Source: Rhodosorus marinus CCMP1338 (Eukaryota > Plantae > Rhodophyta). Taken from it: a DNA stretch of 64,000 nucleotides. The stretch spans positions 558,001 to 622,000 of the forward strand of contig JAMWBK010000011.1 of assembly GCA_029953675.1 (NCBI GenBank). Reading direction: 5' to 3'. The notes below the pieces were generated by a model. It was not told the DNA's origin and made no database searches. It saw nothing but the letters and a program-made list of their open reading frames with translations. The translations under genes were made by a program, and so were the position numbers. Shown piece after piece: positions 1 through 38,899 of this stretch (positions within the stretch are counted from its first letter, which is position 1; every line of letters starts with the position of its first letter).

Positions 1-287
1 ATGCCACGACTGGAGGCGCAGATCGGCGTAGACCAGTATTTATCGAAAAAGACACCCTCCTTCGCCATCTTATCCAGCATCGGCGTGCGCGCGCGATACT
101 TGGGTCTGTCTGTCGTCTCTTCATCGGTACTGGACCAGACCCCGGTATCGTACGGTGGGAACTCCCGGGGGCTGAGATCATCCCCGATCAAAATGATAAT
201 ATTTGGCCTGCTGCCAGCCGCTGCACTATCCACACCGGACAGAACAGCCCAGCACACCACCACAAACCATACCAAACCAATCTTCAT
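1..287 (-). CDS. Secreted S1-family sulfatase, clade A copy A1 (5' part; gene runs off the window edge)
   Basis: Manual translation from ATG at 287: MKIGLVWFVVVCWAVLSGVDSAAAGSRPNIIILIGDDLSPREFPPYDTGVWSSTDEE...TPICASSRG. Signal peptide, NII..DD metal motif, and clear paralogy to the copy at 3459-5099. Confidence 0.9.
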   Translation of the reverse strand, partial: MKIGLVWFVVVCWAVLSGVDSAAAGSRPNIIILIGDDLSPREFPPYDTGVWSSTDEETTDRPKYRARTPMLDKMAKEGVFFDKYWSTPICASSRG

Positions 288-2039
288 CGTGGCGTTCCAA
301 ACACACAATCAACGACAATCATATCCTCAAAATCCACCTCACCAGCCCCCAAAAAAACAAAAGTGGTCCTCAAGTTCCTCACCCCACCTTCTCTCCCAAC
401 CCTCCCCCGCCACACCTAGTCCCCGTATGATCTCTGTATATAGATAACGTATCAACTGATCAGTCACAACACATTTCCCATCAAAAATCAAAACAAAACC
501 AAAAAGGAAACTGACTTTTCCTCCACGCCAAAATGTCGGATTCCGTAGGAATGGATCTCTCTCTCTCTCTCTACACAAAGATCCAAGTCGTTGCAACAAA
601 CCCCTCAAAAATATCTAAAAAGCAAATAAGCCAACATTGCTACCGACAGTTACGCCACCGTCGGAGGTAAAAATACCGAAATGTGGATCTTCACAATCTC
701 ACGAGTCCCCCCAAAAGAATATACAGTAATTCTTAAATACAACGGATCCTTGTCTCTCTAAACAAAACCTCTCAAAAATTTCCAAAAGTCAAGAACTACG
801 TTGTCCACGAGCGGGTCTCTGTCCCCTCTTTCTCCTCCCCCCCGGGGGGGGGGAGTTAGAATATGGGGGTCCGTTTCCATCTCAAAAACCTAAAACTATG
901 TAGTGTTTTTCTCACAGTTCACACCGGGACTAAATTTGGTTTGCTCTCTCCCCCCCGCCCAATCCTCGCCCTACCAAAAGAGTCTTTACAACGGTTTTCC
1001 GGTTTTGGATTTGTTTTATATATAAAATTGAAAATGTCGTGTGTGGACATGGTTTGTCAAATGTCTTGAGATATGATAGGGTTGTTGTTTTTATATAAAA
1101 AAGTTCACATGTCCACATGACCATCGTGTCATTTTTTGTGATTCAAGCTGTAGAAAGTGTTGGAAATCCATTGTTTTCTAGGCACTCATACTAGTTTAGG
1201 GATAATGGCTTTGATTAGAACCAAAAACTCCTATATCTAGTACCAACGTAGGGTATATCAAACTAGGGTTGTGCTGAAGAAAGAATTACCGCACTGGTGA
1301 TAACAATTACCAGCAAATAAGCCTGAAACTAAATACCGGGAATACGAGCTGGAATCGAGGATATTTAACAGTAGAAACTCCGATTCGGTAAGAACGGATT
1401 GTTTTACATATATAGAGAAAGCGGTGTTTTGCCGGTAATAAATCGTAATTGAATTCTTTTCTAGTGTAGCGGAATCGTGGGTTTCATCCTAATGAGAAAA
1501 ACGTTTGTTTTGCTACGGAATCGAGGGTTTGACACCTCGGTTTTGCCACCTCAAGTGGGGTTTCTCAATCCATCATCAATCCATCATCAATTACGCGATT
1601 CGGGGCTGGAATTGAGGGTACAAACCCGAGGGGGGTCGAATATCCAAGTACTGGAAGGATTGTGGAGAAACTCAACCAATATCGCAGCAATACCAGGCTG
1701 ATGCTGATACAGGTTTTATCGTTGCCCTTTTAACATTGAATAGTAAAAGAGGACGTAAACCTCGGAAACGACGATCAAAGCCGCCATATTAAATACAATA
1801 GAGTAGCGGATGAGGGACGCATTTCGTCCAGTATCATACGTTTCTCGGATGCTTGATCCCCGCCTGAGGGGAGTGGGCATGTCTCCACGAGATAAACAAC
1901 ATGTTTGCTTGGTCGCGGAGGATCTGTACCAAAAATCGAGCAAGCAGCAAGTGAAAGTTTCTGGAGAGAGAGGAGCTCCAGGAGAAGATCAGAATTCTTT
2001 TTGATCTGCCAGTGCAAGAGGTGTGCTTACGAAGGGTCG

Positions 2040-2600
2040 GGGTATCACCGACTTGGATTTCTGCGCTCTTTTGATCGTTTAGAACCGAAAATTTCGCCAT
2101 ACGGAACTGGACGCTCGTTGTCCATAGCTCTTCCGTTTGAGAGCGTTCCAACCGGAGGCTTGTTTCATTCACATTTTCTGATTTGAGCGCGTCCCGCTGG
2201 AGGCTCGTCATCTTCAGCTTTTTTATTAGAGAGAGTCCCAACAGTGCTGAATGCCACCAACAACATTGCGATAGAGAGTACAAAGAAGTTCTAGAAAGCT
2301 TCGTCCTTCGAGCCCGGGGTTATTGATGAGGACGGATGCGTGCTTGGCCGGTTTCCAAGAATCTCACGTCTGTAGCAACAGAGTCTTGATGATCATGAGC
2401 TGATACATGCAAATCAGCCAAAGGCGAAAAAGGGTGTTTGGCGAAGCGTTCATGAATCGCCTGTCAAATCCCCAACGGCCCCAGCAAAGCGACGAGCTTC
2501 TCAACCACTATCCCCCCTCGGGGGTTTTTTCCTTTATATTTTAAACCTTTAGTTACTCGGGGCAAATCAATTGGCCCATGTTACCCGTTGAAAGTCATTT
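2040..2600. repeat. Paralogous intergenic spacer block, copy 1 (homologues at about 7330-8010 and 11670-12230)
   Basis: Shared anchors such as cttcgagcccggggttattga, tcacgtct..caa..gagtc, catgagctga.acatg and aattggcccatgtta recur in the same order in all three places. Many indels. Confidence 0.8.
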
Positions 2601-3458
2601 GCGAAAGATTACTAAAAAACCTCCTCGGCTTTTTTGAGCGCCAAAAAGCAGAGGATAATACATACATTTTTCCCTTTTTTTGCACTTTCAAAGGGGAAAA
2701 TGTGGGTACCGAGAAATTTGGTCAATGTTACATTTCCACTTCCAAAACAAACCAAAAAAAGGTGACTGAGAAATGATTTTCTGATATTTTCAGCTTTTCG
2801 GTTGGCCAAATGATTTGATCTAGTTTTAATACCTTTTTGCTGTGGGAAACCACAAAAGGCTGCTTTTTCTCTACTTCAAAGCTTTTTGTTTGCATGAAAT
2901 TGCGAAACGCCACAAAATAGTGGTTGGGGCCGGGTTGGGATTGGATCGACCTAGAAGGCTTTTGGTTTGGGACGGTGAATCGGGGACTCAAAGGTGTTAG
3001 GAATTTTGGAGGGTAGGTACCGACAGCGGTGCAGATATGAATAGCTGGTGGAGATGTATGAAGTAAACGGTGAGGCCAATTCATGGGTTCATGGGGTGTA
3101 ACGTTGGTGTTTTTTATTTCGATCTGTACTACAACCAACCAAAGCGGGTTCGCTCAGAGAAAACAGTAGGACCTCAGTTCACCTCAAAAGTCCGTGTTCG
3201 TATCCTCTTCACGCTACCTGTAATTCCCCGATGGCTCTACTCAGAGCTCGAGCATCTCCGGTCTTTGCTGCTTTCCCCCATCGCAGATGCCATGCCGGTG
3301 TAAGAAATATGTTACAAAACACGGAGCTTTCGGGATTCGTCGACGGTTCACTCTCCTGATCACATCCTTTTCAATCAATGACAAGGGCGGAGGTGACATG
3401 CGAATTTCTACGCCGGTCGCTTAAATTTAACCTTGACTGCCGCATATCTAATGCGCAC

Positions 3459-5099
3459 CTAGCTTTCCTCGGGTTCTGGTACGTAGTCATGTTTAGTGTC
3501 ATAAACCGCAAACGTATCCAGAACCGCTGTTAAACGATCTCGATCGTCTCGGAGTTCTTGCGGTGCTTCCTCCCAGTTTGTGATCATAGGGTAGCTGTCC
3601 AAGTCCCGTTTCTCATTCGACACGTCGTACCATCTCTCTCCGCCATCCTTCATCACATGCGAACCTCTAATGAGCTGCTTGTGACCACTTGATCTTGTCT
3701 GATACGAAAAGTTGTACTCGCGGGTGTGATTTTCCGCCTCCCCAAACAGGTACGGATACAGGCTTTGGCCATGCAGTTCGTATCCCTCCAAAAGGTTACT
3801 GACTCCCATCAGGTCCGCCACCGTCGGTACGATGTCAACGAAAGATACGAACTCGTTCGACCTCCCCTGCTTTGTCATATTCATCCCAGGCGCATAAATG
3901 AACATTGGTACGTGCGGACCCCTTTGCTTTTTCCTCGAGTCCTTGCCGTAGCCCTTGGTGCCGTTGTCTGTCGAGAAAATGATCACCGTATTGTCAAGAA
4001 CCCCGAGTTCTTTGCACTTTTCCACATACTGCCAAATCGTGTAGTCGAGGTACTCGACGTGACGCCGAACCCCGCCATTGTTGATCCCCCTCGTCGTGTA
4101 GTTTCCTGCCTGCCCCGTTATCACTGGCTTTTGCTTTGAGTACTTCTCCTTTGCAGCGTTCCACCGCAGCTTTGGAGTAGGTGGCCATGTATCAACCTGT
4201 TGGTTGATAAAGTCGTATGCTTTATGTCCGATTCTGGAAGTTGCGTACAGGAAGAAAGGTCTATCCTCCTCCGCACATGTTTCCATGAACTGCTTCGTCA
4301 CCGCCATGTCTACGTCAGGACCGAAGGTTCCTTTTCTGTATGCCTGTTCAGTCTCCTCCGTATTCGGATAGTAGACCAATTGCTCGTCCTCGTTTGGAGG
4401 ATTGAACAGCAGTACATGCGGCCGCCAGGTGTAGCTACGCTGAGCTCTAGCTCCTGGTTCTACCTCGCCGGTGTCCTGGTTCACGAAAATCTTGTTACCA
4501 TCCTCGTCCTCTCCCGCTCCGACAATTTGAAAGTCTGACAGAGGACTGGGCGGGAGCTCCTGTGGAGCTGGAACGAAAACACCTTGTCCAAACCCGAACT
4601 TGTCCAGGTTGTCCGCGTCCTTCATCCCTGCTCTTCCTCCCCAAAACGTCCCATACCCAGCAGCCGTTGCCAGATGCCCAATTCCCAGCGGAGACGTGAT
4701 CCAAAGAGGAACGATATCACCGACTTCCCCGTTTTCATCAATCCACGACCCGTAATCAAAATTGTACCACCACTTGGTAATCGTTGCGTACCTCCCAGTC
4801 ATCAGCATGCCTCGACTTGACGCGCAAATCGGCGTAGCCCATGCCTTATCGAAGAAGATCCCCTCCCTCGCAATTTTATCCAGCATCGGCGTCCTCGCTC
4901 GAAATTTGACCTGATCCGTGGGCTCTTCGTCCGTACTGGACCAGACACCAGTATCGTACGACGGAAACTCCCTCGGGCTAAGATCATCTCCAATCAAGAC
5001 AATAATATTAGGTCTACCCGACGCTGCCCCATTCGCTCCATACAGCACAGCGCAGCTCCACACCACAAACAACCCCAAAGCAACTCCAACTCCCTTCAT
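3459..5099 (-). CDS. Secreted S1-family sulfatase, clade A copy A2 (546 aa, intronless)
   Basis: True ATG at 5099 (MKGVGVALG signal peptide); the ORF-track extension is 5' UTR. Motifs NIIVLIGDD, TPICASSRGMLMTGRY, FFLY..IGH, NTVIIFSTDNG, HVPMFIYAPG, DIVPTVADL. Confidence 0.93.
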   Translation of the reverse strand: MKGVGVALGLFVVWSCAVLYGANGAASGRPNIIVLIGDDLSPREFPSYDTGVWSSTDEEPTDQVKFRARTPMLDKIAREGIFFDKAWATPICASSRGMLMTGRYATITKWWYNFDYGSWIDENGEVGDIVPLWITSPLGIGHLATAAGYGTFWGGRAGMKDADNLDKFGFGQGVFVPAPQELPPSPLSDFQIVGAGEDEDGNKIFVNQDTGEVEPGARAQRSYTWRPHVLLFNPPNEDEQLVYYPNTEETEQAYRKGTFGPDVDMAVTKQFMETCAEEDRPFFLYATSRIGHKAYDFINQQVDTWPPTPKLRWNAAKEKYSKQKPVITGQAGNYTTRGINNGGVRRHVEYLDYTIWQYVEKCKELGVLDNTVIIFSTDNGTKGYGKDSRKKQRGPHVPMFIYAPGMNMTKQGRSNEFVSFVDIVPTVADLMGVSNLLEGYELHGQSLYPYLFGEAENHTREYNFSYQTRSSGHKQLIRGSHVMKDGGERWYDVSNEKRDLDSYPMITNWEEAPQELRDDRDRLTAVLDTFAVYDTKHDYVPEPEES

Positions 5100-5199
5100 C
5101 GTGCAGAACAACAAAAAAAAGCCTCCCTGATCCTCACTCCATCGACACACCCGCTCTGCTCCCCCACCTAATTTTCAGATCTCCACACAACTGAGTCAC

Positions 5200-8930: not shown

Positions 8931-10571
8931 CTAGCTTTCCTCGGGTTCTGGGACGTAGTCATGTTCCGTGTCATAAACCGCAAACGTATCTAAAACCGCT
9001 GTTAAACGATCTCGATCGTCTCGGAGTTCTTGCGGTGCTTCCTCCCAGTTTGTGATCTTTGGGTAGCTGTCCAAGTCCCGTTTTTCATTTGACACGTCGT
9101 ACCATCTCTCTCCGCCATCCTTCATCACATGCGAACCTCTGATAAGCTGCTTGTGACCATTTGATCTTGTCTGATACGAAAAGTTGTACTCGCGGGTGTG
9201 ATTTTCCGCCTCCCCAAACAGGTACGGATACAGGCTTTGGCCATGCAATTCGTATCCATCCAAAAGGTCACTAACTCCCATCAGGTCCGCCACCGTAGGT
9301 ACGATGTCAACGAAAGAGACGAACTCGTTCGACCTCCCTTGCTTTGTCATATTCATCCCAGGCGCATAAATGAACATTGGCACGTGTGGACCCCTTTGCT
9401 TGTTCCTCGAGTCCTTGCCGTAGCCCTTGGTGCCGTTGTCTGTCGAGAAAATGATCACCGTATTGTCAAGAACCCCGAGTTCTTTGCACTTTTCCACATA
9501 CTGCCAAATCGTGTAGTCGAGGTACTCGACGTGACGTCTAACTCCGCCTTTGTTGATCCCCTTCGTCGTGTAGTTTCCTGCCTCCCCCATTATCACTGAC
9601 TGTTGCTTTCTGTACTTCTGCTTGTTGGGATTGAACCATAGCTTTGGAGTGGGTGGCCATGTATCAACCTGTTGGTTGATGAAGTCGTATGCTTTATGTC
9701 CGATTCTGGAGGTTGCATAGAGGAAGAAAGGCTTCTCCTCGTCAGCGCAGGTTTCCATGAACTGCTTCGTCACTTCCATATCCACGTCGGGACCGTACGT
9801 CCCCTTCCCGTACGCAGCTTTTGTCTCCTCCGTATTCGGGTAGTAGACCAATTGCTCGTCCTCGTTTGGAGGATTGAACAGCAGTACGTGCGGTCGCCAG
9901 GTGTAGCTACGTTGAGCTCTAGCTCCTGGTTCTACCTTGCCGGTGTCCTTGTTCACGAATATCTTGTTACCATCCTCGTCCACTCCCGCTCCGACAATTT
10001 GAAAGTCTGACAGAGGACTGGGCGGGAGCTCCTGTGGAGCTGGAACGAAAACACCTTGTCCAAACCCGAACTTGTCCAGGTTGTCCGCGTCCTTCATCCC
10101 TGCTCTTCCTCCCCAAAACGTACCATACCCAGCAGCCGTTGCCAGATGTGCAATTCCCAGCGGAGATGTGATCCATAGAGGAACGATATCACCGACTTCC
10201 CCGTTTTCATCAATCCACGACCCGTAATCAAAATTGTACCACCACTTGGTAATCGTTGCGTACCTCCCAGTCATCAGCATGCCTCGACTTGACGCGCAAA
10301 TCGGCGTAGCCCATGCCTTATCGAAGAAGATCCCCTCCCTCGCAATCTTATCCAGCATCGGCGTCTTCGCTCGAAATTTGACCTGATCCGTGGGCTCTTC
10401 GTCTGTACTGGACCATACACCGGTATCGTACGACGGAAACTCCCTCGGGCTCAGATCATCTCCAATCAAGACAATAATGTTAGGCTTCCCCGACGCCGCA
10501 CCATCCGCTCCATGCAGCACGGCGCAGCTCAACACCACGAACAATCCAAATGCAGCTCCAACGCCCTTCAT
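8931..10571 (-). CDS. Secreted S1-family sulfatase, clade A copy A3 (546 aa, intronless)
   Basis: ATG at 10571 (MKGVGAAFG). Same length and motifs as A2, and near-identical protein. Confidence 0.93.
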   Translation of the reverse strand: MKGVGAAFGLFVVLSCAVLHGADGAASGKPNIIVLIGDDLSPREFPSYDTGVWSSTDEEPTDQVKFRAKTPMLDKIAREGIFFDKAWATPICASSRGMLMTGRYATITKWWYNFDYGSWIDENGEVGDIVPLWITSPLGIAHLATAAGYGTFWGGRAGMKDADNLDKFGFGQGVFVPAPQELPPSPLSDFQIVGAGVDEDGNKIFVNKDTGKVEPGARAQRSYTWRPHVLLFNPPNEDEQLVYYPNTEETKAAYGKGTYGPDVDMEVTKQFMETCADEEKPFFLYATSRIGHKAYDFINQQVDTWPPTPKLWFNPNKQKYRKQQSVIMGEAGNYTTKGINKGGVRRHVEYLDYTIWQYVEKCKELGVLDNTVIIFSTDNGTKGYGKDSRNKQRGPHVPMFIYAPGMNMTKQGRSNEFVSFVDIVPTVADLMGVSDLLDGYELHGQSLYPYLFGEAENHTREYNFSYQTRSNGHKQLIRGSHVMKDGGERWYDVSNEKRDLDSYPKITNWEEAPQELRDDRDRLTAVLDTFAVYDTEHDYVPEPEES

Positions 10572-12230: not shown

Positions 12231-12737
12231 ACAAGGGTCCAGCAGTTACTTGTTAACAAATGGACATTCGCAAAAAGAGTACTAAAAAAAACTCAAAACA
12301 AACTTTCGGCGACGGCCAATAATTATGTACATTTTTTCCCATCTGTTTTCAGTTTTGAAGCGAAGCACTGGTTAGCGAGATCAACATAACAGATCTTAGT
12401 AGAGGAAAAGCACTTTACGATGCGTAAATGATGATGTTGATGGAATTTGACTGGGGGGGGCTCTGTTGCAATTCTGGCTCTGGCATTGAATGCATGAATT
12501 TGTCTAATCGGAGCCTGAAGAAAAGCAACCCGAGGGGAAAAAAAACAGACTAAGCGCGGCGAAGATCGCGCGCTTCCAACATCAAAGCAGCGTTCATACG
12601 CCACAGCAAGAAACTTTAACGGGTAAACAACGAGGACAGACGGTCAGGGCGTTCGTGGATCAATTCCCGAAGCCAAACGGGAACCAACGGAATCCATAAA
12701 GCCCAAAGCACTCAATGACCAGAGGATATTGAGCGCT

Positions 12738-12900
12738 TTATCCAAATGCTGCTCCAACGCCCTTCATCGTAGCAGAAAAAAAGGCTCCCCGCTCACTCCC
12801 CCGTCGAAATTGAGGACCACCCGCAGTTGATTCACGCGTACTTATATATACACCACCCTCCCATCCGAGCCTCAAGCCAAACAACAAAAAAAAGAAAAAG
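12738..12900 (-). pseudogene. Relic of a clade A sulfatase: promoter, 5' UTR and first 9 codons only
   Basis: ATG at 12767 reads MKGVGAAFG*, identical to the first 9 aa of A3. It is preceded by a TATA tract and caccctcccatcc, as upstream of A2. No sulfatase homology follows. Confidence 0.8.
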
Positions 12901-14264
12901 GAAAGCCCTAAACCTTCTCCACCAGAAACTGAAGAACAGAGTAACGGACTTTTGTCCTTTCCTCGTATTGAATTCTGGAGTCGGAAACCCAGATAGATTT
13001 CAACATCCATTCTGTTTAACCTAGAAAGAAACTTTTTCTACCGCATCAAAACTGCATAAAAAGCCCAAAAAGCAACCAACGCACACGACGAGCCGCATTT
13101 TGAGCTCGCGGAGAGCGAAATGGTCACCGAGTTCGACGCTTCGAGAAAGATTGTGTCGCGCTATAGAGAGAGGATGCTCCTCGTTGCTCCCACATCCTCT
13201 CTCTCTCCCCGTTTTTTTGCGGACGTGTTGGTCGTTTCTTTCCGCAAACGAAAATCCAGAGAGTTGAGAAACAAAAGTGCTTCCAATCGGGAAGGTTGCT
13301 TCCTTGTAAAAGCAAAGACAAGCGAAGCTAAATTAAAAATGTTTTCGTCGAGAGCGAGTTTAGTCGCGTTGGAACTGGTAAGCTCTTCACAGAGGCTAGT
13401 AGAGACCACGTGGGGAGGCGCACACACGCCATTACCTTCTGGTAATGGTGTGTATTGCTCAAGCAACTACCCTGATAACAACAGAGTGGCAAAGCATATC
13501 CCTCTCACGACGTGTGATATTTGTCCCGAGGGAGTTGCCCTCCTGACCCTCCTCACTGCAGTAGCTTGCCGTATTCTATACCACTAGATTGGTTCTAGGT
13601 ATAGGAGTATTTGGTTCTAATCTAAGTTATTCGTCTTAGACTAAGTATGAGGTGCCTAGTTCATATATGGAGTTCCACCAAAGTCTACCCATCATGACGT
13701 GTGATGTTGTTTGTCCCGAGGGAGTGTTAATATATCTAAAACAATTTTATGCGAAAGTTCATCTGTCATGTCGTCCCAATTGACAAGACGTATTATATCT
13801 AAATTTTGTGATTAAGGTAATGCCAAAAAACAGTTTGTTGGGTTGTAAATTTGCGACAGTAAAGAATACAGAAAACGGGGTTTTTGGGGAGACCATAGGC
13901 CTCGAGAAGTCAGAGCAGCGTTGATGCGCGACAGCAGCAGAGGCAGCCAACTTGGACAGGTAAACAACGAGGAGAGACGCTTGATAAAAGTAATACCGTT
14001 TTTTCTGGGTTTTTCTAAAACTTTTCGCATGGATTGACGAAAACGGTTGCAGGGTAGTTCGCGGAACAACACTCCCGAAGTCAACGCTCACCAAGCTCAC
14101 CAAGCTCACCAAATGGTATCGAGAAAACCTTTTCTCCCGATCGTCGACTTGATGGGAGCTTTTATGTTAATTTGGCAGCTTATTATTAGCATGTACTAGA
14201 ACACCTCCACAACAGCGGAGGTGCACGCACTATGCGCAACTCCCTATTTTCGCTTTGTCCTCTT

Positions 14265-19544: not shown

Positions 19545-19712
19545 ACGGCTCAGTTCCCGGCGGCAAAACTTGCTAATAGTGAACACGTCCGCGGCAACTG
19601 TCCACACCCCGCCGCTCGAGACCAATTTACGGCTCAGTTCCCGGCGGCAAAACTTGCTAATAGTGAACACGTCCGCGGCCACTGTCCACACCCCGCCGCT
19701 CGAGACCAATTT
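19545..19712. repeat. 84-bp tandem duplication (2 copies, 1 mismatch)
   Basis: acggctcagttcccggcggcaaaacttgctaatagtgaacacgtccgcggc[a/c]actgtccacaccccgccgctcgagaccaattt starts at 19545 and 19629. Confidence 0.95.
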
Positions 19713-27015: not shown

Positions 27016-28608
27016 TCAAATGTAGTCATGTGCTGTGTCGTAGACATCGTACTTTCGCATGATCCGGATCAAATTGTCCCTCTCCCGTCGGAAACGAGGT
27101 GGAAGTGCACTCCAGTTTGTGATTGGAGGGTACGAGTCATAGTCTTCGACTTCATTATCAACCCTCCACCAGCTCCTGTTCCCGTCTCGCATCACCAGCC
27201 TTCCTCGGATCATTTGAATATCTCGGATGTATGCATACGCCATAATTCGATGTCGACGTTTCGAAGTCGTCAGGTACGGCCACAGGTTTAATCCGTGTCT
27301 CTTGTACTTCACAGGTTGTTCAATCACGTCCTCAGCTCCCATGATGTCAGCCAGTGTTGGCAGCATATCTACCACATGCACCAACTCCTCCTGTCTTCCT
27401 TGCTTTGTCAGTTCCATCCCAGGAGCGTACACCACAAAAGGCACGTGAGGTCCCTTCTGCCTTTCACTACTACCTTTTCCCCACTCTGTAGTCCCGTTGT
27501 CAGAAGCGAAGATGATGATCGTGTTATCCATGATCCCCAACTCCTTCAGGTGTTCTACATATTGCCACAACATGTAGTCCACATATTCAATATGTCGATA
27601 CAATCCTCCGTCGTTGATCCCCTCCGTTTCGTAAACCCCCGCGCTACCTGTGATGGTGACCTCTGACCTTGTGTACGAACGCGTTTCCTCGTCCCAAGTT
27701 AGCTTAGGAGTTGGTGGGTAGTCATTTCCTTTTTCCGGTTGTATAAAGTTAAAGGCTTTATGGCCAAGCTTCGAATTGTGGAAGATGAAGAACGGCTTAT
27801 CCTCGTCATTGCTTCTCGTTATGAAATCTATTATCGACTCGCTCTCCACGTCCGGTCCGTACGTAGAAAGTCCATACTCTGCACGGAGCTCATCAGTGTG
27901 CGGCCAGTACGTGAAGTCCTCCGTCGTTCCGGGGAAGTTCATCAGGTCAATATGTGGCTTCCAGAAGAAACTTCGCTGGGTACCAATGGAAATTTCCTCA
28001 CCAGTGTCCACGTTGATCCTCACTCGCTCACCGTTCCTTGTCGACCACCTGATTCTAAATTCCGGCGAGTACGGGCTCGGAGGTTTGAAGGCCGCGTTCG
28101 GCAAAAATACTCCCTCATCAAATCCAAACTCCCGTAGGTCCGCCGTCTTCATTCCTGGCTTCCCCGCCCACATCGTCTTGTACCCAGCCTGCTGCGCCAA
28201 GTGCCCTACAAGAATCGGCGACGTCAGATACAGAGGAACGAAATCCTCTGTCTCACCTTGCGCGTTTGTGAACGTTCCATAATCCCTGTTGTACCACCAT
28301 TTCGTTAGGCTCGCGAATCGGCCCGTCAACAACATCGCCCGGCTTGGTGAGCAAATCGGAGCCGCCCATGCCTTGGTAAAGTACGCTCCATCCCTTGCAA
28401 ACATATCCAGCATTGGCGTTTTCGCTCGCAAGCTCTCGTTGCTTGACTCAATATTCTTACCACCAACCCACCTCGGGGCGTTGTAGAACCCCAGTTCCCG
28501 CGGACTAACATCGTCGATGTACATGAGCAATATGTTCGGCTTGGTTGCCTGCGCCGCCGTCTCGGACAGCCCAGACAACAAGAGACACACCAGCACAGCT
28601 GCAATCAT
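27016..28608 (-). CDS. Secreted S1-family sulfatase, clade B copy B1 (530 aa, intronless)
   Basis: ATG at 28608 gives the signal peptide MIAAVLVCLLLSGLSETAAQA. Motifs NILLMYIDD, APICSPSRAMLLTGRF, AGKPG, FHNSKLGH, ASDNG. Confidence 0.92.
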   Translation of the reverse strand: MIAAVLVCLLLSGLSETAAQATKPNILLMYIDDVSPRELGFYNAPRWVGGKNIESSNESLRAKTPMLDMFARDGAYFTKAWAAPICSPSRAMLLTGRFASLTKWWYNRDYGTFTNAQGETEDFVPLYLTSPILVGHLAQQAGYKTMWAGKPGMKTADLREFGFDEGVFLPNAAFKPPSPYSPEFRIRWSTRNGERVRINVDTGEEISIGTQRSFFWKPHIDLMNFPGTTEDFTYWPHTDELRAEYGLSTYGPDVESESIIDFITRSNDEDKPFFIFHNSKLGHKAFNFIQPEKGNDYPPTPKLTWDEETRSYTRSEVTITGSAGVYETEGINDGGLYRHIEYVDYMLWQYVEHLKELGIMDNTIIIFASDNGTTEWGKGSSERQKGPHVPFVVYAPGMELTKQGRQEELVHVVDMLPTLADIMGAEDVIEQPVKYKRHGLNLWPYLTTSKRRHRIMAYAYIRDIQMIRGRLVMRDGNRSWWRVDNEVEDYDSYPPITNWSALPPRFRRERDNLIRIMRKYDVYDTAHDYI

Positions 28609-28612: not shown

Positions 28613-28929
28613 TGAAAACGGTGAAGATACATGCAAGCGAATCCAATAGCTAACACAAAAATAGATGTAATCTGCACGTCTCTCTGCCGTGCTGAAAACG
28701 GTGAAGATACATGCAAGCGAATCCAATAGCTAACACAAAAATAGATGTAATCTGCACGTCTCTCTGCCGTGCTGAAAACGGTGAAGATACATGCAAGCGA
28801 ATCCAATAGCTAACACAAAAATAGATGTAATCTGCACGTCTCTCTGCCGTGCTGAAAACGGTGAAGATACATGCAAGCGAATCCAATAGCTAACACAAAA
28901 AAAGATGTAATCTGCACGTCTCTCTGCCG
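28613..28929. repeat. 80-bp tandem repeat, 4 copies, abutting the B1 start codon
   Basis: Unit tgaaaacggtgaagatacatgcaagcgaatccaatagctaacacaaaaatagatgtaatctgcacgtctctctgccgtgc starts at 28613, 28693, 28773 and 28853. Copy 4 has one substitution and is slightly truncated. Confidence 0.97.
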
Positions 28930-30411
28930 GTGGCTGGCTAATCTCCAGGCCTACCACAGCGAAACCCGCAGATGTTCTTCCCGTCTCCCCACACTCTTAT
29001 CTCAATGCATATAATCAGAGGGCTTGATCCTAAACAGTGCTCCCCTCTTCTCCGGTACACATGCTTGCCAGCTAAGAGTTGACAAGAGTTAGCTCCCCGA
29101 GGTTCCTCCGCGCGTAGGCAACAGTCCGAAGTTCTCGAAAAAGGAAAAAAAAATTGATCCATGTTGTGATGTGTCTCGGGAATGGTATCAGGTTAAGCGT
29201 CATATATATAGGAAATTTTACGAAAACTAGAACTTCATAGCTGAATGAATAATTGCAATATTCAAGTATTTTGATATTGTATATAGCATTTATAGCTTAT
29301 ACTACAATAATTATGGAATGATATGAGGACAAAGGTCTTTATTTTTTATTATTCAATCTAGCAGAACCATATTTTGGCCAGATTTAAAACCCAGAGCAAA
29401 CTTCGTCCCAAAAACGAGATCGCATGGAAATCAGCTGTTACGAATTTCGCTGAATGCGCGGAGCTGACTTTATATTTTAAAGACATCGATGTTCGGATTT
29501 TGGTCTATGTCAATTCTTCATTCTTTCAAAATGCGGTAAAAACTCAAGTAGTCGTGCCGAATTCATTAAAACCAACCAATAGATGAAAATTTTGGATGTT
29601 TTGGTCGTGTGCCGCGTTTTGGACGCATGGGTTTTTGGTCAGTTTTATTCAGACACTACGACCCTGGTAGCGCTCCTCCTCCTCCTTTTTGGGGATGTCG
29701 TGGGGTATGCGCTAAGCGAACAAGTTTGGCTTTGTTCGCTTAGTGGTTTGACTTACCTTTTAGAAGTGAACTCCTTGATTCCTCAAATCCGAAACACAAG
29801 AACATAGGATATCTGTGAACCTGTCTACTACCCAGAACCTGGAGTGCTGTGTCTTGGTCAACCCGGGCTGACGCGATTTCCAGACCACCGTCTAGATACG
29901 TAGCTGGAAACGACCAGCAAAGACGTAGCACAATGCCACGGGAGAGGTCCCAGGTTTCTCCTAATCAACTTATGGGACCCCAAGACCGAAACTGTGCCGT
30001 GGGTAGAAGAATATCTGAGAACACAGGCCTTGCAGCGATGCCCGGACTTGTGCCTAGGGCTCGTAGCTCCTGCAATGGCGTTAACACCGATCGCTGCATG
30101 CGCAATTCGCTACAGGGCAAAATGACCACTGATCAACGTAGATATCGGAACTCTCTGACGCGTAGGACTAGAACTGGATTCTGAACCGCTTCGGAGTGGG
30201 TCTTCCAGTAGCCAAATAGTGCTTGGATGAAACCCACTCACCCTCAAGTCAAAGGTACTCTAACACCGGAAGCGCAGCGTCACAAGATTTGAAAAGTGTA
30301 GCATCTAGAGGACTTGCTAATGTAGTTAACTGCTCTGTATCTCCTTGTGTACAAGCAGCTTGCAGCTTGCTCCTTGCCGCCGTCGCGACGGTACAGGTTC
30401 CATTCGTATCC

Positions 30412-30570
30412 TCGGGAATCACTTGACTTATAATTTTTGCGTTCGAGCAGACTTTGACGAAGTCGACAGCGGCCGAATCGCCGTCGCGGCTCTACTGATT
30501 TCAATCGTATCGGGGGAATCACTTGACTTACCATGTTTGCGTTCGAGTAGACCCTGACCAAGTCGACAGC
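30412..30570. repeat. About 58-bp imperfect direct repeat feeding into the hairpin
   Basis: gggaatcacttgactta....t.t.gcgttcgag.agac..tgac.aagtcgacagc at about 30413 and 30514. Confidence 0.85.
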
Positions 30571-30895: not shown

Positions 30896-32506
30896 TCAAA
30901 TATAGTCATGCTCTGTCTCATAGAGGTCAAATCTGCCCATGATCCTAATCAAATTGTCCCTCTCCACTCCGAATTCTGCCGGTAGAGCGTCCCAGTCTGT
31001 GATTAGTGGGTATGAGTCGTAGTCTTCAACCTCCTCGTCAACCTTCCACCAGTCGTTGTTCATATCCCGCATCACAAGCTTTCCTCGAATCTGTTGCAAT
31101 TCCTTAATGTAGGAATAGAGATATCCCCGATGCCTGGGCTTGGCTGTTATCAGGTACGGCCACAGATTTTTGCCTTGTTTCGAGTATCCATCAAGCAAGT
31201 GCTCAACTCCCATGATGTCAGCAAACGTTGGCAGCATATCGACTACATGCACCAGCACGTCCTGTCTTCCCTGCTTTGCAAGATTCATCCCAGGAGCGTA
31301 GATCACCATCGGAACGTGAGGGCCCCTCTGCCTTACACGACTGCCCTTACCCCAAAATGGAGTCCCATTGTCAGAAGCGAAGATTATGATAGTGTTGTTC
31401 ATGATCCCCAAGTCCTTCAAGTGCTCCACATACTGCCACAGCATGTAGTCGCAATACTCAATGTGTCGATTCAAGCCTCCGTTGTTGATCCCCTCCGTTT
31501 CGTAGACGCCATTGCTCCCAGTGATGGTGACGTCTAGGCGGTTGTACTTTTGTTTTTTCTCATTCCAATATAGCTTAGGTGTTGGCGGATAGCTGCTTCC
31601 CTTCTCAGGTTGGATGAAGTTGAAGGCTATGTGCCCCAGTTTCGAGTTGTGGAAGACGAAGAAAGGCTTTTCCTCCTCGTGGCTTCTTGTCATGAAGTTT
31701 ATAATAGACTCGCTCTCCACGTCCGGTCCGTACGTGGCAAGTCCATACTCAGCCTGAAGCTCAGCCGTGTGGGGCCAGTACGTGAAGTCCTCCGTCGTTC
31801 CGGGGAAGTTCATCAGGTCTATGTGTGGCTTCCAGAAGTAACTTCGCTCGCGTCCAACGTTTACAATCTTCCCAGTGTCATTGTTAACGTTCACAGTCTT
31901 TCCGTCCCGGACCTCTTTCTTGATTACGAACTCAGGAGAGTACGGTGTGGGAGGGTCAAACGCCGCATTTGGCAAGAATACACCCTCATCAAAACCAAAC
32001 TCTCGCAGGTCCGCCGTCTTCATTCCGGGCTTCCCAGCCCACATCGTCTTGTACCCAGCCTGCTGAGCCAGGTGCCCTACAAGTATAGGGGACGTCAGAT
32101 ACAGGGGAACGAAGTCTTCAGTCTCACCATCAGCGTTAGTGAAGGTTCCATAGTCCCTGTTGTACCACCATTTCGTTATATGAGCGAATCGGCCGGTCAA
32201 GAACATGGCCCTACTCGGGGAACAAACCGGAGCTGCCCAAACCTTGGTGAAATACATTCCCTCTCGCGACATCATGTCCAGCATCGGAGTTTTCGCGCGA
32301 AATCTCTCCTCATCGGACTCGACAGTTTTCTTACCAACCCAGGTGGGGGCGTCGTACATCCTCAGCTCCCTCGGGCTGACATCATCCACGTACATAAACA
32401 AGATGTTCGGCTTGGTAGCCTGAGCATCTGCACCGGACCGACCCAAGCACCACAGCACACACAACAGTGCATATGCAAACATGCTCAAAAACCGACCTGC
32501 AGACAT
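30896..32506 (-). CDS. Secreted S1-family sulfatase, clade B copy B2 (536 aa from ATG 32506; alternative ATG 32482)
   Basis: Signal peptide ...MFAYALLCVLWCLGRSGADAQA; motifs NILFMYVDD, APVCSPSRAMFLTGRF, AGKPG, ASDNG. Confidence 0.92.
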   Translation of the reverse strand: MSAGRFLSMFAYALLCVLWCLGRSGADAQATKPNILFMYVDDVSPRELRMYDAPTWVGKKTVESDEERFRAKTPMLDMMSREGMYFTKVWAAPVCSPSRAMFLTGRFAHITKWWYNRDYGTFTNADGETEDFVPLYLTSPILVGHLAQQAGYKTMWAGKPGMKTADLREFGFDEGVFLPNAAFDPPTPYSPEFVIKKEVRDGKTVNVNNDTGKIVNVGRERSYFWKPHIDLMNFPGTTEDFTYWPHTAELQAEYGLATYGPDVESESIINFMTRSHEEEKPFFVFHNSKLGHIAFNFIQPEKGSSYPPTPKLYWNEKKQKYNRLDVTITGSNGVYETEGINNGGLNRHIEYCDYMLWQYVEHLKDLGIMNNTIIIFASDNGTPFWGKGSRVRQRGPHVPMVIYAPGMNLAKQGRQDVLVHVVDMLPTFADIMGVEHLLDGYSKQGKNLWPYLITAKPRHRGYLYSYIKELQQIRGKLVMRDMNNDWWKVDEEVEDYDSYPLITDWDALPAEFGVERDNLIRIMGRFDLYETEHDYI

Positions 32507-33931: not shown

Positions 33932-34408
33932 ATAATTAAGAATTTTTACGTCAATAAATTCTAAAATAGGATGACAATGTGTCCATTTTTTTGTAATACA
34001 ATAGATGTCCTAAAATTCGTCGTGAGTTGAGGATAAGACCCGCTCCTTTTCCTTGCGGTTTTTTTTTGAAATTGAGATTTGGTGCTCTCCCATAATTAAG
34101 AAATTTTAAATCAATAAAAAATTCTAAAATAGGATGACTGCTTGTCGATTTTTCCGTAATACAATAGATGTTCTAAATTTGTCTTGTGGATAGCACCCGC
34201 TCCTTTGAGATGCGGTTTTTCTGGAAATTGAGGCTTGTCTCGCTCCGATAATTAAGAATTCTTATGTCAATAAATTCTAAAATAGGATATTTGTATACCA
34301 AGTTTTTCGTAATACAATAGATGTTCTAAATTTGTCTTGAGTTGTGGATAAGAACCGCTCCCCTTCGTGGCGGTTTGTTTTTTTTGGAAATTGAGGTTTG
34401 TCCTCGCT
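33932..34408. repeat. About 158-bp AT-rich tandem repeat, 3 degenerate copies
   Basis: ataattaagaa...tcaataaattctaaaataggat...gtaatacaatagatg..ctaaa...ccgctcc...gcggttt...gaaattgag starts at 33932, 34092 and 34248. Confidence 0.9.
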
Positions 34409-34675
34409 TCTGTGGTGACTTGTTTCTATTTCTGTGGGCGGGTTGGTCGTGCAGTGTTCTCTTGCTGAATCGCTCCGGAGAAGGGATGGGAAAGCTTAGG
34501 AGAGGGGTCCGCCGCGTTCGGGCCAGACTCGTGCTCGGCCGTGCACGGCAGCTGGAATGATTTTCTGGGCAGCTGCTAGATCCGCTCTTGGTTCGGGTCT
34601 TGAGAGGTGGAGGGGGGTGGGAGGTGGGTGGTTCTGTCCCATCGATGTCGCGCCTTGGGGCTTTATTTTTTGAGC

Positions 34676-36243
34676 ATGTTTCCACCTGTTCTGGTGGTCC
34701 CGTTGTAGTGCTTGGGCAAGTCCGCAGCAGCTGCCCAGTAAGCCAAGCCGAACGTCCTGTTTATATACATTGATGACAACAGTAACGGTGAACTGCGGGT
34801 GGGCGGTCGTAGATCCGCGGTGGAAAGATCAATTCCGTGAACGAGAAGTTCCACCCGAAGACCCCCATAGTCTCTATGCTCGCACGAGATGGAGTTTACT
34901 TCACCAAGGCGGGGGCAGCTTCGGCGTGTTCTCCGAGTCGGGCCATGTTCTCAACCGGCCGATATGCGAGGCTGACGACGTCGTGGTACAACGGGGATTA
35001 TGGAACCTTCACAAACCGTGAGGGTGAAACTGAGGGCCACGTTCCCCTGTAATTGGCGCCCTGTTACTTGTAGAGCACGTCGCTCAACAAGCTGGGTACA
35101 AAACGTTGTGGACTGAGAAGCCCAGAATGAAGACGCGGACCTGAGCGAGTTTGGATTTGGTGCGGGCTTATTCCTGCCAAAGGCGGCGTTCAAACTCCCA
35201 GCCCGTACAGCCCGGAGTTTGTAATCAGGTCAAGGATTGTGAATGGCAAAACGGAGAATTTCAATGTCGACACCGGGGAGAAAGTGAGCCCCGGAGGCGA
35301 GCGAAGTTACTTCTAGAAGCCGCACATCGACCTGATAAACTTCTCAGGAGCTACCCAGGACTTCACGTACTGGCCGCACGCGGAAGAGCTCCAGGTTGAG
35401 TATGGGTGTTCTACATACGGTCCGGACGTGGAGAGCGAATCTATCATATATTTCATGACGAAAAGCCATGAGGATGAAAAGACGTTCTTCATCTTCCATA
35501 AATCGAAACTAGTGCACATAGCATTCAAAACTTTATCCAACCTGACCAGGGAACGAGCTATCCTCCAACACCTGAGCTAACTTGGGACGAAGCCACACAG
35601 GCATACACGCGCAGAAGTCACCGTCGCAGGTGGCAATGGCGTTTACGAAACGGAGGGGATCAACGACGGAGGCTTCCATCGACACTTGGATTGCGTCGAC
35701 TACATGACATGGCAATATGTAGAACACATGAAGGACTTGGGGGTCATGGACAACACCATCATCATCCTCGCTTCTGACAACGGGACTACACACTGGGGTA
35801 AGGCCCGTAGGTCAAAGCAGAGCGGCACTAGCATCCCGATGGTCATCTACGTCGTGGGATGCAACTCACAAAGCAAGGAAGATTGGACGTGATGGTGCAT
35901 GTGGTAGATATGCTGCCAACGTTTGCCGACATCATGGGAGCTAAGGACTTACTTGAACAGTCATTGAAGTAAAAGAGACACGGTGGCCGTACCTGACTAC
36001 GACCAAAACTACACATCGAATCGTGCCGTACTCGTACCTTCGCGATCTCCAAATCATCCGAGGAAAGCTCGTGATGCGAGATGCTAACGAGAACTGGAGG
36101 AAGGTTAACGAGGAAGTCAATGACTATGACTCGTACCCACAGATCACAGACCGGAGCACCCTTGCAGCCAAATACCGAACCGAGAGGGACAGTCTCGTAC
36201 GAATCATGTACGGGTCTATGAGACCGAACGTGATTATGTCTGA
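34676..36243 (+). pseudogene. Inverted, degraded clade B sulfatase pseudogene (B2-like)
   Basis: Collinear homology from MFPPVLVVPL*CLGKSAAAAQ*AKPNVLFIYIDD through ACSPSRAMFSTGRY and NTIIILASDNG to YETERDYV*. Multiple stops and frameshifts. Confidence 0.93.
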
Positions 36244-36705
36244 GGACTTCAGGGTAGTTAGTTGACCAAGGAATCGAAGGACTACCTATTAAGAGGAACA
36301 GGCTACATTTCAAAGAGGTCCAGCCCAGACAAACACAATATCCACGCTCTTTGCTTTTCGACCCGTCACAAGGGGCGGGTGGCGAAAAGAAGCGCTAACC
36401 TCAGCCGGATGCGAGAGCGGGTTCTAAACAATAACGAAAAAAGTTCTGCTCCGGACTATCGCATCGCATGACGCTCATAGCCAGCTGAGACCGCGCAAAA
36501 GCTTGCGGTTCCGGCCCCCACCGAGCCTAGTCCGCCGCCCTTTGCACCAAATGCGCTGCGTAACCTCAATCAGAAAGTCTTTGGCGGCTTCCTGAGTCGG
36601 CTCAACTCCTCCAAAATGAAGGGGATAGAAGATAACGACATTGTGATCTGCCAGAGCATCTCGACTTTGCGCGCGCTCTGGCAGCTTCAGCTAGGTCTTC
36701 ATCTC

Positions 36706-37257
36706 CTAGCAAAACGGACGCAACATGCTTGGTAAACCTAAGGGATTGGACTTGCTGCACATCTCCCGTAGTGGTTTGTACATGACTGGATTCCACCGCA
36801 CAGCTATACAATAATATGCCGTGCCCCTAACGTCCATTCTCCCCGGAGGCACAGGGACCAGTGCGGCGGTGTCGGACCATCATGTCTGATCGGTGTCGAC
36901 TTACCATAAAAACTTGCTGCGGTTGCAGTAGCGTACACCCCACATTAGGATGGTGTGCAGCGAGCTCATCCGTCCGGATAGGTCTAGCACGTTCGGTGCT
37001 TGGACACGAAGACCTGAACCAGTCCAATAATCCACTGTTTCCAAATAGTCGCCGGTTTTTAGGTCTTCATCTACAATCTAATAATAATTACTGACACTCC
37101 AAGAAACACTCCAAAAGGTCTTTCCTTGAACATTATTACGTCTTACGCTCCTACTCCCCATTTGCTTCGGCAGGATCTCCATGCCCAACTCGAGCACCTC
37201 CACACCCACGAGAATTTTCAGCGGAGTGGTCAGCGACAAGAACTCGGAAGGGAACAT
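36706..37257 (-). CDS. Putative small three-exon gene (109-134 aa), unknown function
   Basis: Exons 37257(or 37182)-37147, 37077-36905 and 36826-36706 join in frame through two GTAAG...TAG introns of 69 and 78 nt. No family recognised. Confidence 0.3.
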
Positions 37258-37273
37258 ATTTGCGTCGAATTCA

Positions 37274-38899
37274 TCACACTGGTCCTTCGTAGTCATGTTC
37301 AGTATCGTAGACGTCAAACTCTTTCAATACACGCCTCAGATACTCTCGCTCTTTTCGATATTTTGGCGGCAGGGAACCCCAGTTCCTAATCCTCGGATAT
37401 GAGTCGTAGTCGTCCACCTCCACGTCAACTTTCCACCAGTTTTTATCCGCATCGCGCATCACCAGCTTGCCTCTGATTATCTGCAATCCTCCGATGTAGG
37501 AGTAGACGTATCTCCGATGCACCTCAACCCCCTTCGTCAGATACGGCCACAGGCTCTTCCCATGGGCCTTGTAGGATTTGGGCTCTTCAAGCGCCTCGGG
37601 TATCCCCATCATGTCCGCAAAGGTAGGCAGCATGTCGACCACATGCATAAGAACGTCTTGCCGGCCTTTCTTGGTGAGCCTGAGACCCGGTGCCCACATA
37701 AGGAACGGTATGTGCGGGCCCCTCTGTTTCCTTCCGACGTGCTTGCCCCAGTCCGCTGTTCCATTGTCCCCCGCGAAGACGAAGATGGTGTTCTTCAGAG
37801 TTCCGATTTTCTTAAGCTGCTCGATGTACTGCCAGATCATGTAGTCGAGGTACTCGATGTGGCGGTGAAGGCCGCCGTTGTTGATGCCCGTTGCAGAGTA
37901 CTTTCCCTTGATGCCCTTGATGGTGACCTTGGACCTCACATACCGACCCTCCTTAGCTATCCACTTGAGCTTTGGCGTGGGCGGCCACACGTTCTCTTCC
38001 TTCGGATTGAGAAAGTTGAACGCCTTGTGTCCGAGTTTGGAGTTGTGGAAGACAAAGAAGGGCTTCTTCTGCTGCTTGCTTCGGACCATGAAGCGTTTGA
38101 TGAGGTTTGCCTCCACGTCAGGACCGTACGTGGACGTGCCATAGTCTCGCCTGGTTGGTTCAGAATGGGGCCAGAGGGTGAAATCTTTCTTCACGCCGGG
38201 AAAGTTCATCAGCTGGATGTGCGGTTTCCAGAAGAAGCTGCGTTCGTTTCCGTTTGATTCCATCACCTCGTCGCCGCTGTCCATGTTGATGCGCTTTTTC
38301 GTCCCGTTCTTCTGAGTCACCCTTCCGACCCGAAACGACGAGTATTTGCTTGGCGGATCGATCGACGGGTTTGGAACGAATACGCCCTCGTCGAAGCCAA
38401 ACTCCCTCAGGTCGGCATCCTTCATTCCGGGCTTCCCAGCCCACAAAGTCTTATACCCAGCCCTCTGAGCGAGATGCCCGAGAAGCATTGGTGACGACAC
38501 GTGCAAAGGAACAATGGGGTTCTTCTTCCCCTTGGCATCGACATAGGATCCATAGTCCCTGTTGTACCACCACTTGGTCATCGTCGCGAAACGGCCGGTT
38601 AATAGCATGGCCCGACTTGGAGAGCAAACAGGCGCAGCCCAAGCCTTTGTAAAATATACACCATTCTTCGCGAACTTGTCCAGCATCGGAGTGTATGCCA
38701 GAAACTCCCGATCCTTCGAGTGCACGCTCTCAGGCGCCGCCCAAGTCGGCGCCTTGTACGCCCGGATCTCACGTGGACTGATGTCGTCTCCATAAATAAA
38801 CACGATGTTCGGCTTGATGTCCCGAGCCGTAATACCATCCGGTCCCAGCAGCAACACTGCCACAACGGAGATGACAAACAAGGCCCAACTGCTACCCAT
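37274..38899 (-). CDS. Secreted S1-family sulfatase, clade B copy B3 (541 aa, Lys/Arg-rich)
   Basis: ATG at 38899 (MGSSWALFVISVVAVLLLGPDGITA); motifs NIVFIYGDD, APVCSPSRAMLLTGRF, AGKPG, AGDNG. Confidence 0.92.
   Translation of the reverse strand: MGSSWALFVISVVAVLLLGPDGITARDIKPNIVFIYGDDISPREIRAYKAPTWAAPESVHSKDREFLAYTPMLDKFAKNGVYFTKAWAAPVCSPSRAMLLTGRFATMTKWWYNRDYGSYVDAKGKKNPIVPLHVSSPMLLGHLAQRAGYKTLWAGKPGMKDADLREFGFDEGVFVPNPSIDPPSKYSSFRVGRVTQKNGTKKRINMDSGDEVMESNGNERSFFWKPHIQLMNFPGVKKDFTLWPHSEPTRRDYGTSTYGPDVEANLIKRFMVRSKQQKKPFFVFHNSKLGHKAFNFLNPKEENVWPPTPKLKWIAKEGRYVRSKVTIKGIKGKYSATGINNGGLHRHIEYLDYMIWQYIEQLKKIGTLKNTIFVFAGDNGTADWGKHVGRKQRGPHIPFLMWAPGLRLTKKGRQDVLMHVVDMLPTFADMMGIPEALEEPKSYKAHGKSLWPYLTKGVEVHRRYVYSYIGGLQIIRGKLVMRDADKNWWKVDVEVDDYDSYPRIRNWGSLPPKYRKEREYLRRVLKEFDVYDTEHDYEGPV

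Follow-up and report, generated by a model that had tools for sequence, protein, structure and literature searches.

An array of predicted secreted S1 sulfatases with bacterial relatives in the nuclear genome of the red alga Rhodosorus marinus

How did an array of S1 sulfatase genes come to reside in the nuclear genome of a red alga, and what might the encoded enzymes do there? The question is raised by a stretch of 64,000 nucleotides from Rhodosorus marinus CCMP1338 (termed the window hereafter), in which sulfatase-derived sequences are spread over positions 1-38899. Sulfatases of the S1 class normally depend on a formylglycine residue. It is considered likely that a bacterial S1 sulfatase gene was transferred into an ancestor of Rhodosorus and amplified there to an array of secreted enzymes acting on sulfated glycans.

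Neither formylglycine-dependent (FGly) sulfatases nor true SUMFs were detected in Chondrus, Porphyridium and Cyanidioschyzon (PMC4659905), red algae had yielded no conclusively identified sulfatase (PMC7359372), a statement repeated in a 2026 review (PMC12988356), and the route by which red algae remodel their sulfated walls is described as unknown in these papers. The remark of the initial annotation, which had been made from the letters of the window alone, that red algae are poor in sulfatases therefore agrees with what has been published. Against this background, the array constitutes a counter-example to the statement, repeated up to 2026, that red algae lack formylglycine-dependent sulfatases. 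Both the enzyme family and horizontal transfer into red algae are known in kind, and the novelty lies in the red-algal setting and in the question of maturation. The proteins themselves are already public under generic names, and no link between Rhodosorus and sulfatases was found in a literature search.

Anatomy, constraint and turnover of the array

Exact protein matches placed the window on the nuclear contig JAMWBK010000011.1 of R. marinus CCMP1338 (GCA_029953675.1; 1,442,050 bp, long-read), where window coordinates are converted to contig positions by adding 558,000. The nuclear assembly of this strain, chromosome-scale and built from long reads, comprises 31.2 Mb with 8,392 genes and 24,821 introns, approximately 3 introns per gene (PMC10250338). 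Sulfatase DNA was located by the listing of open reading frames (ORFs) and by tblastn of six long ORFs against the window, which revealed six complete genes, one gene cut by the edge, one pseudogene and one 5' relic, belonging to two clades. Gene calls on the same contig indicated that the array extends approximately 15.6 kb beyond the left window edge, where the rest of P0008 (544 aa) is followed by a 546-aa gene, a 540-aa gene and then an intron-containing fumarase gene. The complete array, bordered by fumarase at left and by ribosomal protein uS7 at right, harbors nine intact S1 sulfatase genes and one pseudogene across approximately 54.5 kb, all on one strand except the inverted pseudogene.

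Clade A is represented in the window by S1 to S3 together with the edge gene, and accounts for six of the nine intact genes. The edge gene S0 (P0008) contributes its 5' end of approximately 95 codons (1-287, minus strand), which shares 73% amino acid identity with S1 by tblastn (gene call L004 10001-11635). It is followed by S1 (3459-5099, minus strand), a single-exon gene of 546 aa with a predicted signal peptide and the motifs C-A-S-S-R and GGRAGMK (PF00884, E 7e-28; gene call on the same contig), and by S2 (8931-10571) and S3 (14265-15905), both of 546 aa on the minus strand (PF00884, E 2e-27 and 1e-27); S2, identified with P0009, has its exact protein on JAMWBK010000011.1, and S3 is covered by a gene call. 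Between S2 and S3, comparison by blastn with the upstream and start regions of S2 and S1 disclosed the putative relic of a lost copy, composed of a sulfatase 5' flank and the first codons, on the minus strand at 12740-12892 plus 13682-13807. The segment 12740-12892 shows 74-91% nucleotide identity to those regions (E 3e-11 for S2 and 4e-10 for S1) and a weak tblastn match (E 7e-5), and is the weakest of the sulfatase-derived items.

Clade B is composed of S4, S5, S6 and the pseudogene. S4 (27016-28608, minus strand, 530 aa) carries the canonical C-S-P-S-R and is supported by a gene call (PF00884, E 1.5e-29), S5 (30896-32506, minus strand) encodes 536 aa, or 528 aa in the public gene call that starts from a later Met (PF00884, E 4e-26), and S6 (37274-38899, minus strand, 541 aa; PF00884, E 4e-29) forms the right-hand end of the array. 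The pseudogene (34670-36243, plus strand) is oriented opposite to the other genes of the array and converges with S6. Amino acid identity amounts to 74-93% within clade A (S1 to S3 and the edge gene), 58-75% among S4, S5 and S6 of clade B and 46-49% between the two clades.

Every intact sulfatase gene consists of one ORF without interruption and aligns collinearly, over 93-100% of its length, with homologues from bacteria and with Rhodosorus transcripts. The array is positioned mid-contig and is flanked by the intron-bearing host genes fumarase, uS7 and Erv1, in which introns are recognized because the gene spans exceed the coding lengths; uS7 (41269-41948, plus strand), the first host housekeeping gene right of the array, is called as 149 aa over 680 nucleotides (PF00177). 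The initial annotation had judged that the host looks like a red alga and had described seven coding copies, one pseudogene and one relic in two clades, intronless and with signal peptides, over 39 kb. The host was confirmed by the exact proteins on the CCMP1338 contig, the counts proved exact by tblastn and blastn (with the relic as the weakest entry), and single ORFs with hydrophobic N-terminal cores beside intron-bearing neighbours bear out the gene structure; the extent of 39 kb holds within the window, but the full array reaches further left, with three intact genes lying wholly or partly outside.

The intact copies are under purifying selection, with pairwise dN/dS values (ratio of nonsynonymous to synonymous divergence; Nei-Gojobori, pairs with unsaturated dS) of 0.10-0.35 among the nine intact genes, 0.13-0.35 within clade A and 0.18 between S6 and its orthologue on L085. 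The latter is a 4.4-kb contig of another strain (JGI sample 3300016967), which is collinear with window positions 34558-39141 at 82-83% nucleotide identity; this value indicates deep divergence among strains labelled R. marinus. L085 carries two convergent sulfatase genes together with the spacer between them, which would be compatible with genomic DNA or with a read-through transcript. Each subclade possesses an orthologue in the R. marinus transcript sets MMETSP0011 or MMETSP0315, and orthologues of S6 were detected in Rhodosorus transcript sets at 87-89% identity.

Turnover of the array is evident at several depths. Values of dS among the array genes range from 0.10 up to saturation, with young duplicates represented by S0/Sm1 (dS 0.10) and S1/S2/S3 (dS 0.20-0.34) in comparison with an inter-strain dS of 0.31, and the tree places the S0/Sm1 duplication after the divergence from the MMETSP0315 orthologue. 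The pseudogene bears nine frameshifting indels and five nonsense codons (14 disabling lesions) relative to P0003 at 85% nucleotide identity, and this orthologue P0003 is intact in L085. P0005, the MMETSP0315 transcript orthologous to S4, displays C-S-R-S-Q for C-S-P-S-R, Gln for the catalytic His and an internal deletion, and by these features reads as a decaying or pseudo-enzyme copy, whereas S4 is intact in CCMP1338. Young duplicates, a dead copy, the decaying P0005 and the 5' relic together amount to a birth-and-death pattern, as the initial annotation had proposed.

Several repeats lie within the array. Four copies of an 80-bp tandem repeat (99% identity) occupy 28613-28929 and lie upstream of S4, 5 bp away from its start codon; the repeat spuriously lengthens the raw S4 ORF and may influence the promoter or 5' untranslated region of S4. 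The spacer between the divergent S5 and pseudogene contains an AT-rich repeat of approximately 160 bp (33932-34400, 2.9 copies, 75% identity), part of which recurs upstream of S5. Tandem duplications were also found in array spacers at 19545-19712 (84 bp x 2, 98%) and 30378-30570 (100 bp x 1.9, 81%), and an inverted dispersed repeat of approximately 180 bp (73.5% identity) links the array spacer at 12534-12715 with the right end of the window at 63814-63988.

Protein signatures and the divergence of the two clades

The array genes are identified, by their sequences, as S1 sulfatases of the alkaline-phosphatase superfamily. All six complete window genes match PF00884 with E-values of the order of 1e-26 to 1e-29, and the full 301-position model is covered in five of the six. 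The AlphaFold2 model of S6 (predicted local distance difference test, pLDDT, 91; predicted template modelling score, pTM, 0.90) was matched to S1 sulfatase structures with a Foldseek probability of 1.00, template modelling (TM) scores of 0.55-0.58 and 15-19% identity in the structural alignments, and no close solved structure was found in sequence and fold searches of the PDB. Sequence comparison shows the family to be no more than a distant relative of the S1_11, S1_15, S1_16, S1_19 and S1_20 structures. Matches to the NCBIfam equivalogs named arylsulfatase and choline-sulfatase fell far below the cut-offs, and no name was transferred from them.

In all nine proteins, a short polar or basic N-terminal stretch precedes a hydrophobic core of 10 residues (mean Kyte-Doolittle 2.3-3.4), and homology to the bacterial mature proteins begins at K-P-N-I. 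A sequence scan of the nine array proteins detected neither a second membrane-like segment nor a retention motif for the endoplasmic reticulum (ER). The proteins are accordingly predicted to be secreted via N-terminal signal peptides.

Active-site residues were read from a profile alignment to 9FVT, 7ANA and 6PRM and from the tabulation of motifs. Every intact copy keeps the D-D pair, Cys and Arg in the maturation motif, the LGH His, the D-N pair and the (Y/W)GK Lys, and the D-D pair (S6 residues 38-39) and D378/N379 are invariant or nearly so across the family alignments. In clade B, C-S-P-S-R is present in all seven intact sequences and the first catalytic Lys is retained. In clade A (eight sequences from three strains), the motif reads C-A-S-S-R in seven of the eight and C-A-A-S-R in P0006, and three changes are fixed: the Pro of C-x-P-x-R has given way to Ser or Ala, Arg stands in place of the first catalytic Lys, and a His has become Ala. 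Across 103 aligned bacterial members, the motif Pro and the His altered in clade A are close to invariant, and the Lys is conserved as well.

Conservation of at least 95% across these 103 bacterial members is seen in 108 columns. Of these, seven changed on the Rhodosorus stem (His108, Gln158 and His288 included), a further 11 in clade A and a further six in clade B; approximately 90 of the 108 bacterial-invariant columns are retained in the Rhodosorus proteins. In clade B the catalytic signature of the bacterial members is kept, whereas clade A, with its fixed changes of Pro, Lys and His, has probably shifted in maturation or specificity.

Origin, ancestral context and competing explanations

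In a collection of 5.8 billion proteins, with UniRef, nr, EukProt and MMETSP included, the only eukaryote-sourced relatives among the matches listed came from Rhodosorus, and the next matches were full-length bacterial proteins at 40-44% identity, with E-values declining from 1e-117 to 2e-81, 3e-74 and finally 3e-31. An exhaustive HMMER scan of 1.84 billion cluster representatives returned 41 at E <=1e-30, with no full-length match above 44% identity outside the Rhodosorus cluster; the ten top representatives were looked up and proved to be bacterial or metagenomic. No other eukaryotic member was found in either collection, and the outgroups next after the family are also bacterial. The family comprises 192 loci in species-representative bacterial genomes, and its hosts include Flavobacteriia (Zobellia, Wenyingzhuangia, Lutibacter, Algibacter and others), Flammeovirga, Verrucomicrobiota, Kiritimatiellota (Pontiella), Planctomycetota and the gammaproteobacteria Catenovulum, Paraglaciecola, Gayadomonas and Vibrio.

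The 16 Rhodosorus sequences form one clade with maximum-likelihood support of 100/100 in a 43-sequence tree and 100 in a 104-sequence tree, and in the former they are nested in bacteria at 82/81 support. On account of the distribution, the absence of introns and the bacterial outgroups, the parsimonious reading is one ancient transfer, from a marine bacterium to an ancestor of Rhodosorus, which we infer from these sequence data. The top-ranked bacterial match, from Verrucomicrobia S94, was considered as a clue to the donor and set aside as uninformative, its locus lying among housekeeping genes. Within the bacterial part of the tree, L061 (Clostridia metagenome-assembled genome, MAG, SZUA-378) and L071 (Bacteroides sp. 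gut MAG) contain near-identical members (branch lengths 0 and 0.018), each beside GH16, and this near-identity across phylum labels points to mis-binning or very recent transfer. With L071, the family reaches gut Bacteroides.

The neighbourhoods of bacterial homologues were surveyed in 78 loci, 8 kb to either side of the homologue, and contain a mean of three sulfatase genes. GH43-like neighbours in 18 of the 78 loci correspond to GH117 by PDB match (4U6D, E 4e-226; 3P2N, anhydro-galactosidase), GH2 is present in 15 loci, and the GH16 enzymes found in 14 are nearest to beta-porphyranases (4AWD, E 1e-51); GH3 occurs in 12, and GH29 and GH28 in seven each. These glycoside hydrolase neighbours imply that the ancestral role was the desulfation of algal sulfated glycans, which in many bacterial loci appear to be red-algal galactans. 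The family differs from the characterised S1_11 porphyran sulfatases, to which its match is partial and weak, and both 9FVT and S1_11 were judged too distant for a substrate to be transferred from them. According to the gene calls, no glycoside hydrolase partner genes are present in or beside the Rhodosorus array. Production of sulfated heteropolysaccharides is reported for Rhodosorus (PMC12073197), and the algal enzymes are inferred to be carbohydrate sulfatases that most probably edit the alga's own matrix.

The acquisition and amplification that we favour would have proceeded as follows. One gene of a bacterial subfamily associated with polysaccharide utilization loci would have entered the Rhodosorus ancestor by horizontal transfer and gained a signal peptide of eukaryotic type along with the codon usage of its host. 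Subsequently, an early split may have given rise to clades A and B, followed by tandem duplication, inversion and pseudogenisation. By analogy with the family, the signal peptide would direct the protein into the ER, where the Cys of C-x-P-x-R would be oxidised to formylglycine; in the mature secreted enzyme, the hydrated aldehyde would then hydrolyse the sulfate ester, aided by Ca2+ bound at the D-D and D-N pairs together with conserved Arg, Lys and His. Sulfated glycans would be the most likely substrates, either those of the sulfated heteropolysaccharide matrix that the alga itself produces or algal galactans of exogenous origin. A more specific proposal, possible but doubtful, is that Rhodosorus matures and uses Cys-type sulfatases through a co-acquired formylglycine-generating enzyme (FGE) or another route, that clade A has adapted to this route or to new chemistry, and that the enzymes, taken over from bacteria that degrade red-algal galactans, edit the alga's own matrix.

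Several points weigh against this account. In the 104-sequence tree Rhodosorus sits on a deep unresolved branch, and the approximately unbiased (AU) test did not reject a tree in which all bacteria form one clade (p = 0.22); the trees and this test neither place Rhodosorus firmly inside bacteria nor single out a donor. Clade A is non-canonical relative to C-x-P/A-x-R at position +2 and also at the catalytic Lys, and the His after the first catalytic Lys is replaced by Gly in Rhodosorus and by Gln in the bacterial relatives, with Gly also in 7ANA. Published work on red algae describes no true SUMF/FGE in those that were examined (PMC4659905), and formylglycine maturation is a prediction from the family. 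The transcripts derive from two related strains and not from CCMP1338 itself. The subfamily has no biochemically characterised member, bacterial or algal, with the nearest solved structures at 15-19% identity, and the bacterial contexts are heterogeneous (GH3, GH28 and GH29 as well) and do not point to one particular substrate.

Alternative accounts of the origin have to be considered in this light. Contamination by bacterial DNA or an assembly artefact, although bacterial protein similarity and the lack of introns could evoke it, has practically no likelihood: the genes lie in the middle of a long-read contig of 1.44 Mb, with intron-bearing eukaryotic genes on both sides, their GC content at third codon positions (GC3) of 0.55-0.70 resembles that of other window ORFs (0.48-0.69), the spacers measure 3-8 kb at approximately 45% GC, the intact copies diverge by 7-54% at the protein level, and both the collinear contig of another strain and transcripts in Rhodosorus sets are available. 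The copy divergence and this synteny likewise argue against an assembly expansion, which the initial annotation had named as an outcome that would speak against its reading, together with a lack of expression, to which the transcripts of the two related strains reply, and with placement in a vertically inherited eukaryotic clade. No such clade was found in the protein collections searched. Survival of an old eukaryotic sulfatase subfamily in Rhodosorus alone is in keeping with the long stem, with the old A/B split at saturated dS and with the AU test, which leaves Rhodosorus as sister to all bacterial members unrejected; it is very improbable nonetheless, since it requires loss in all other sampled eukaryotic lineages, other red algae examined included, and has to accommodate bacterial outgroups and intronless genes in a genome of approximately 3 introns per gene. 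The bacterial origin suggested by the initial annotation is therefore upheld in so far as the relatives are bacterial or metagenomic only, at no more than 44% identity, but the nesting in bacteria is not significant.

As for function, clade A may no longer consist of formylglycine sulfatases at all, and may instead comprise binding proteins or enzymes of different chemistry or maturation. The replacements of Pro, Lys and His fixed in eight sequences from three strains, and the 11 fixed changes at bacterial-invariant columns as compared with six in clade B, lend this some weight, but the retention of Cys, Arg, D-D, D-N, the LGH His and the second Lys, the dN/dS of 0.13-0.35, the conservative nature of Lys to Arg and the fit of C-A-A-S-R in P0006 to the accepted P/A variant keep it possible rather than probable. 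Foraging, in which the secreted enzymes would act on exogenous sulfated polysaccharides of other algae or bacterial biofilms, for mixotrophy or for loosening foreign matrices in the manner of the bacterial donors, draws on the predicted secretion and on bacterial relatives residing in catabolic loci with porphyranase-like GH16, GH117, GH2, GH3 and GH29. It is nevertheless unlikely in a photoautotroph with its own reported sulfated polysaccharides, as desulfation alone does not release carbon and glycoside hydrolase partners are missing in and beside the array. The predicted secretion would equally suit sulfate scavenging by extracellular arylsulfatase-like proteins induced by sulfur starvation, as with Chlamydomonas ARS, and S1 sulfatases do exist in green and brown algae (PMC4659905). 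Such a role is still less likely, because seawater sulfate at 25-28 mM is thought to make it needless for marine algae (PMC4659905), the relatives are tied to carbohydrate loci rather than to the use of aryl or alkyl sulfates, and the nine paralogues, kept under constraint in two clades of old standing, point to several specificities.

Taken as the domestication and diversification of a polysaccharide-degrader gene in an alga, the array offers a handle on that process, on the enzymatic desulfation of their own matrix by red algae and on formylglycine formation in a eukaryote possibly devoid of SUMF1. Moreover, the subfamily is common in marine loci of porphyran and agar type, and the assignment of a substrate would inform both the bacterial and the algal side.

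Neighbouring features and comparison with known systems

Two orphan genes separate clade A from clade B, namely unkA (20274-21248, plus strand, 324 aa) and its paralogue unkB (22786-23751, plus strand, 321 aa; 69% amino acid identity). Both contain hydrophobic stretches and have homologues, transcripts among them, in Rhodosorus; searches for Pfam and NCBIfam domains found none, and no homologues were found outside Rhodosorus, so that no link to sulfatase maturation could be drawn. Right of the array, the host genes are interspersed with tRNA-Pro(CGG) (42972-43044, plus strand) and tRNA-Met(CAT) (54548-54622, minus strand). An NADPH-dependent FMN reductase gene (PF03358, E 2e-33) is present on the plus strand at 55939-56416 and 57139-57888, with the second copy approximately 1.4 kb upstream at 69% nucleotide identity, and a calcineurin-like metallophosphoesterase (59887-61039, minus strand) appears to be broken into three or more ORF pieces that lie in different frames, an indication of introns.

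Red algae have a known route for the removal of sulfate from wall galactans in the galactose-6-sulfurylases, an unrelated family that acts by formation of the 3,6-anhydro ring and not by hydrolysis. The FGly-sulfatases of green and brown algae (the arylsulfatases of Chlamydomonas and Volvox, and those of Ectocarpus) are also eukaryotic algal S1 enzymes, none of which was among the relatives recovered for the Rhodosorus array; in Chlamydomonas and Volvox, sulfatases are present without a recognisable SUMF (PMC4659905). A putative bacterial-derived sulfatase of Ahnfeltia (bioRxiv 10.64898/2026.05.26.727817), compared by description only, resembles the present case in being red-algal and attributed to a bacterial origin and in having a pseudogenised copy in one population, but it is presented as a single gene of a florideophyte macroalga, for which neither a subfamily nor an array is described.

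Among solved structures, the best sequence match (E 6e-20, S6 alone) is OpSulf1 of Ochrovirga pacifica (9FVT), an endo C6-sulfate alpha-1,3-mannan sulfatase, which shares the S1 fold and catalytic core with the Rhodosorus enzymes and whose substrate is an algal sulfated glycan. It is nonetheless distant, being matched over two segments only, has the canonical Lys-x-His and belongs to another subfamily. The exo-L-galactose-6-sulfatases BpS1_11 and BuS1_11 (7SNJ and 7LHA) from porphyran loci of gut Bacteroides have GH16 porphyranase, GH2 and GH29 neighbours, as do many of the bacterial relatives, but the match is partial (E 2e-10 and 2e-8) and the subfamily is different.

The closest counterpart is the bacterial S1 subfamily itself, with members in Catenovulum agarivorans DS-2, Zobellia, Wenyingzhuangia, Flammeovirga, Rhodopirellula, Pontiella and Paraglaciecola, which are full-length collinear with the Rhodosorus proteins at 40-44% identity and approximately 520-550 aa. 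GR[YF]AxxxKWW, the D-D pair, C-S-P-S-R (in clade B), LGH, DNG and YGK/WGK are shared by both sides. Unlike these bacterial genes, those of Rhodosorus are free of glycoside hydrolase company and form a stand-alone array of nuclear paralogues equipped with signal peptides of the ER type.

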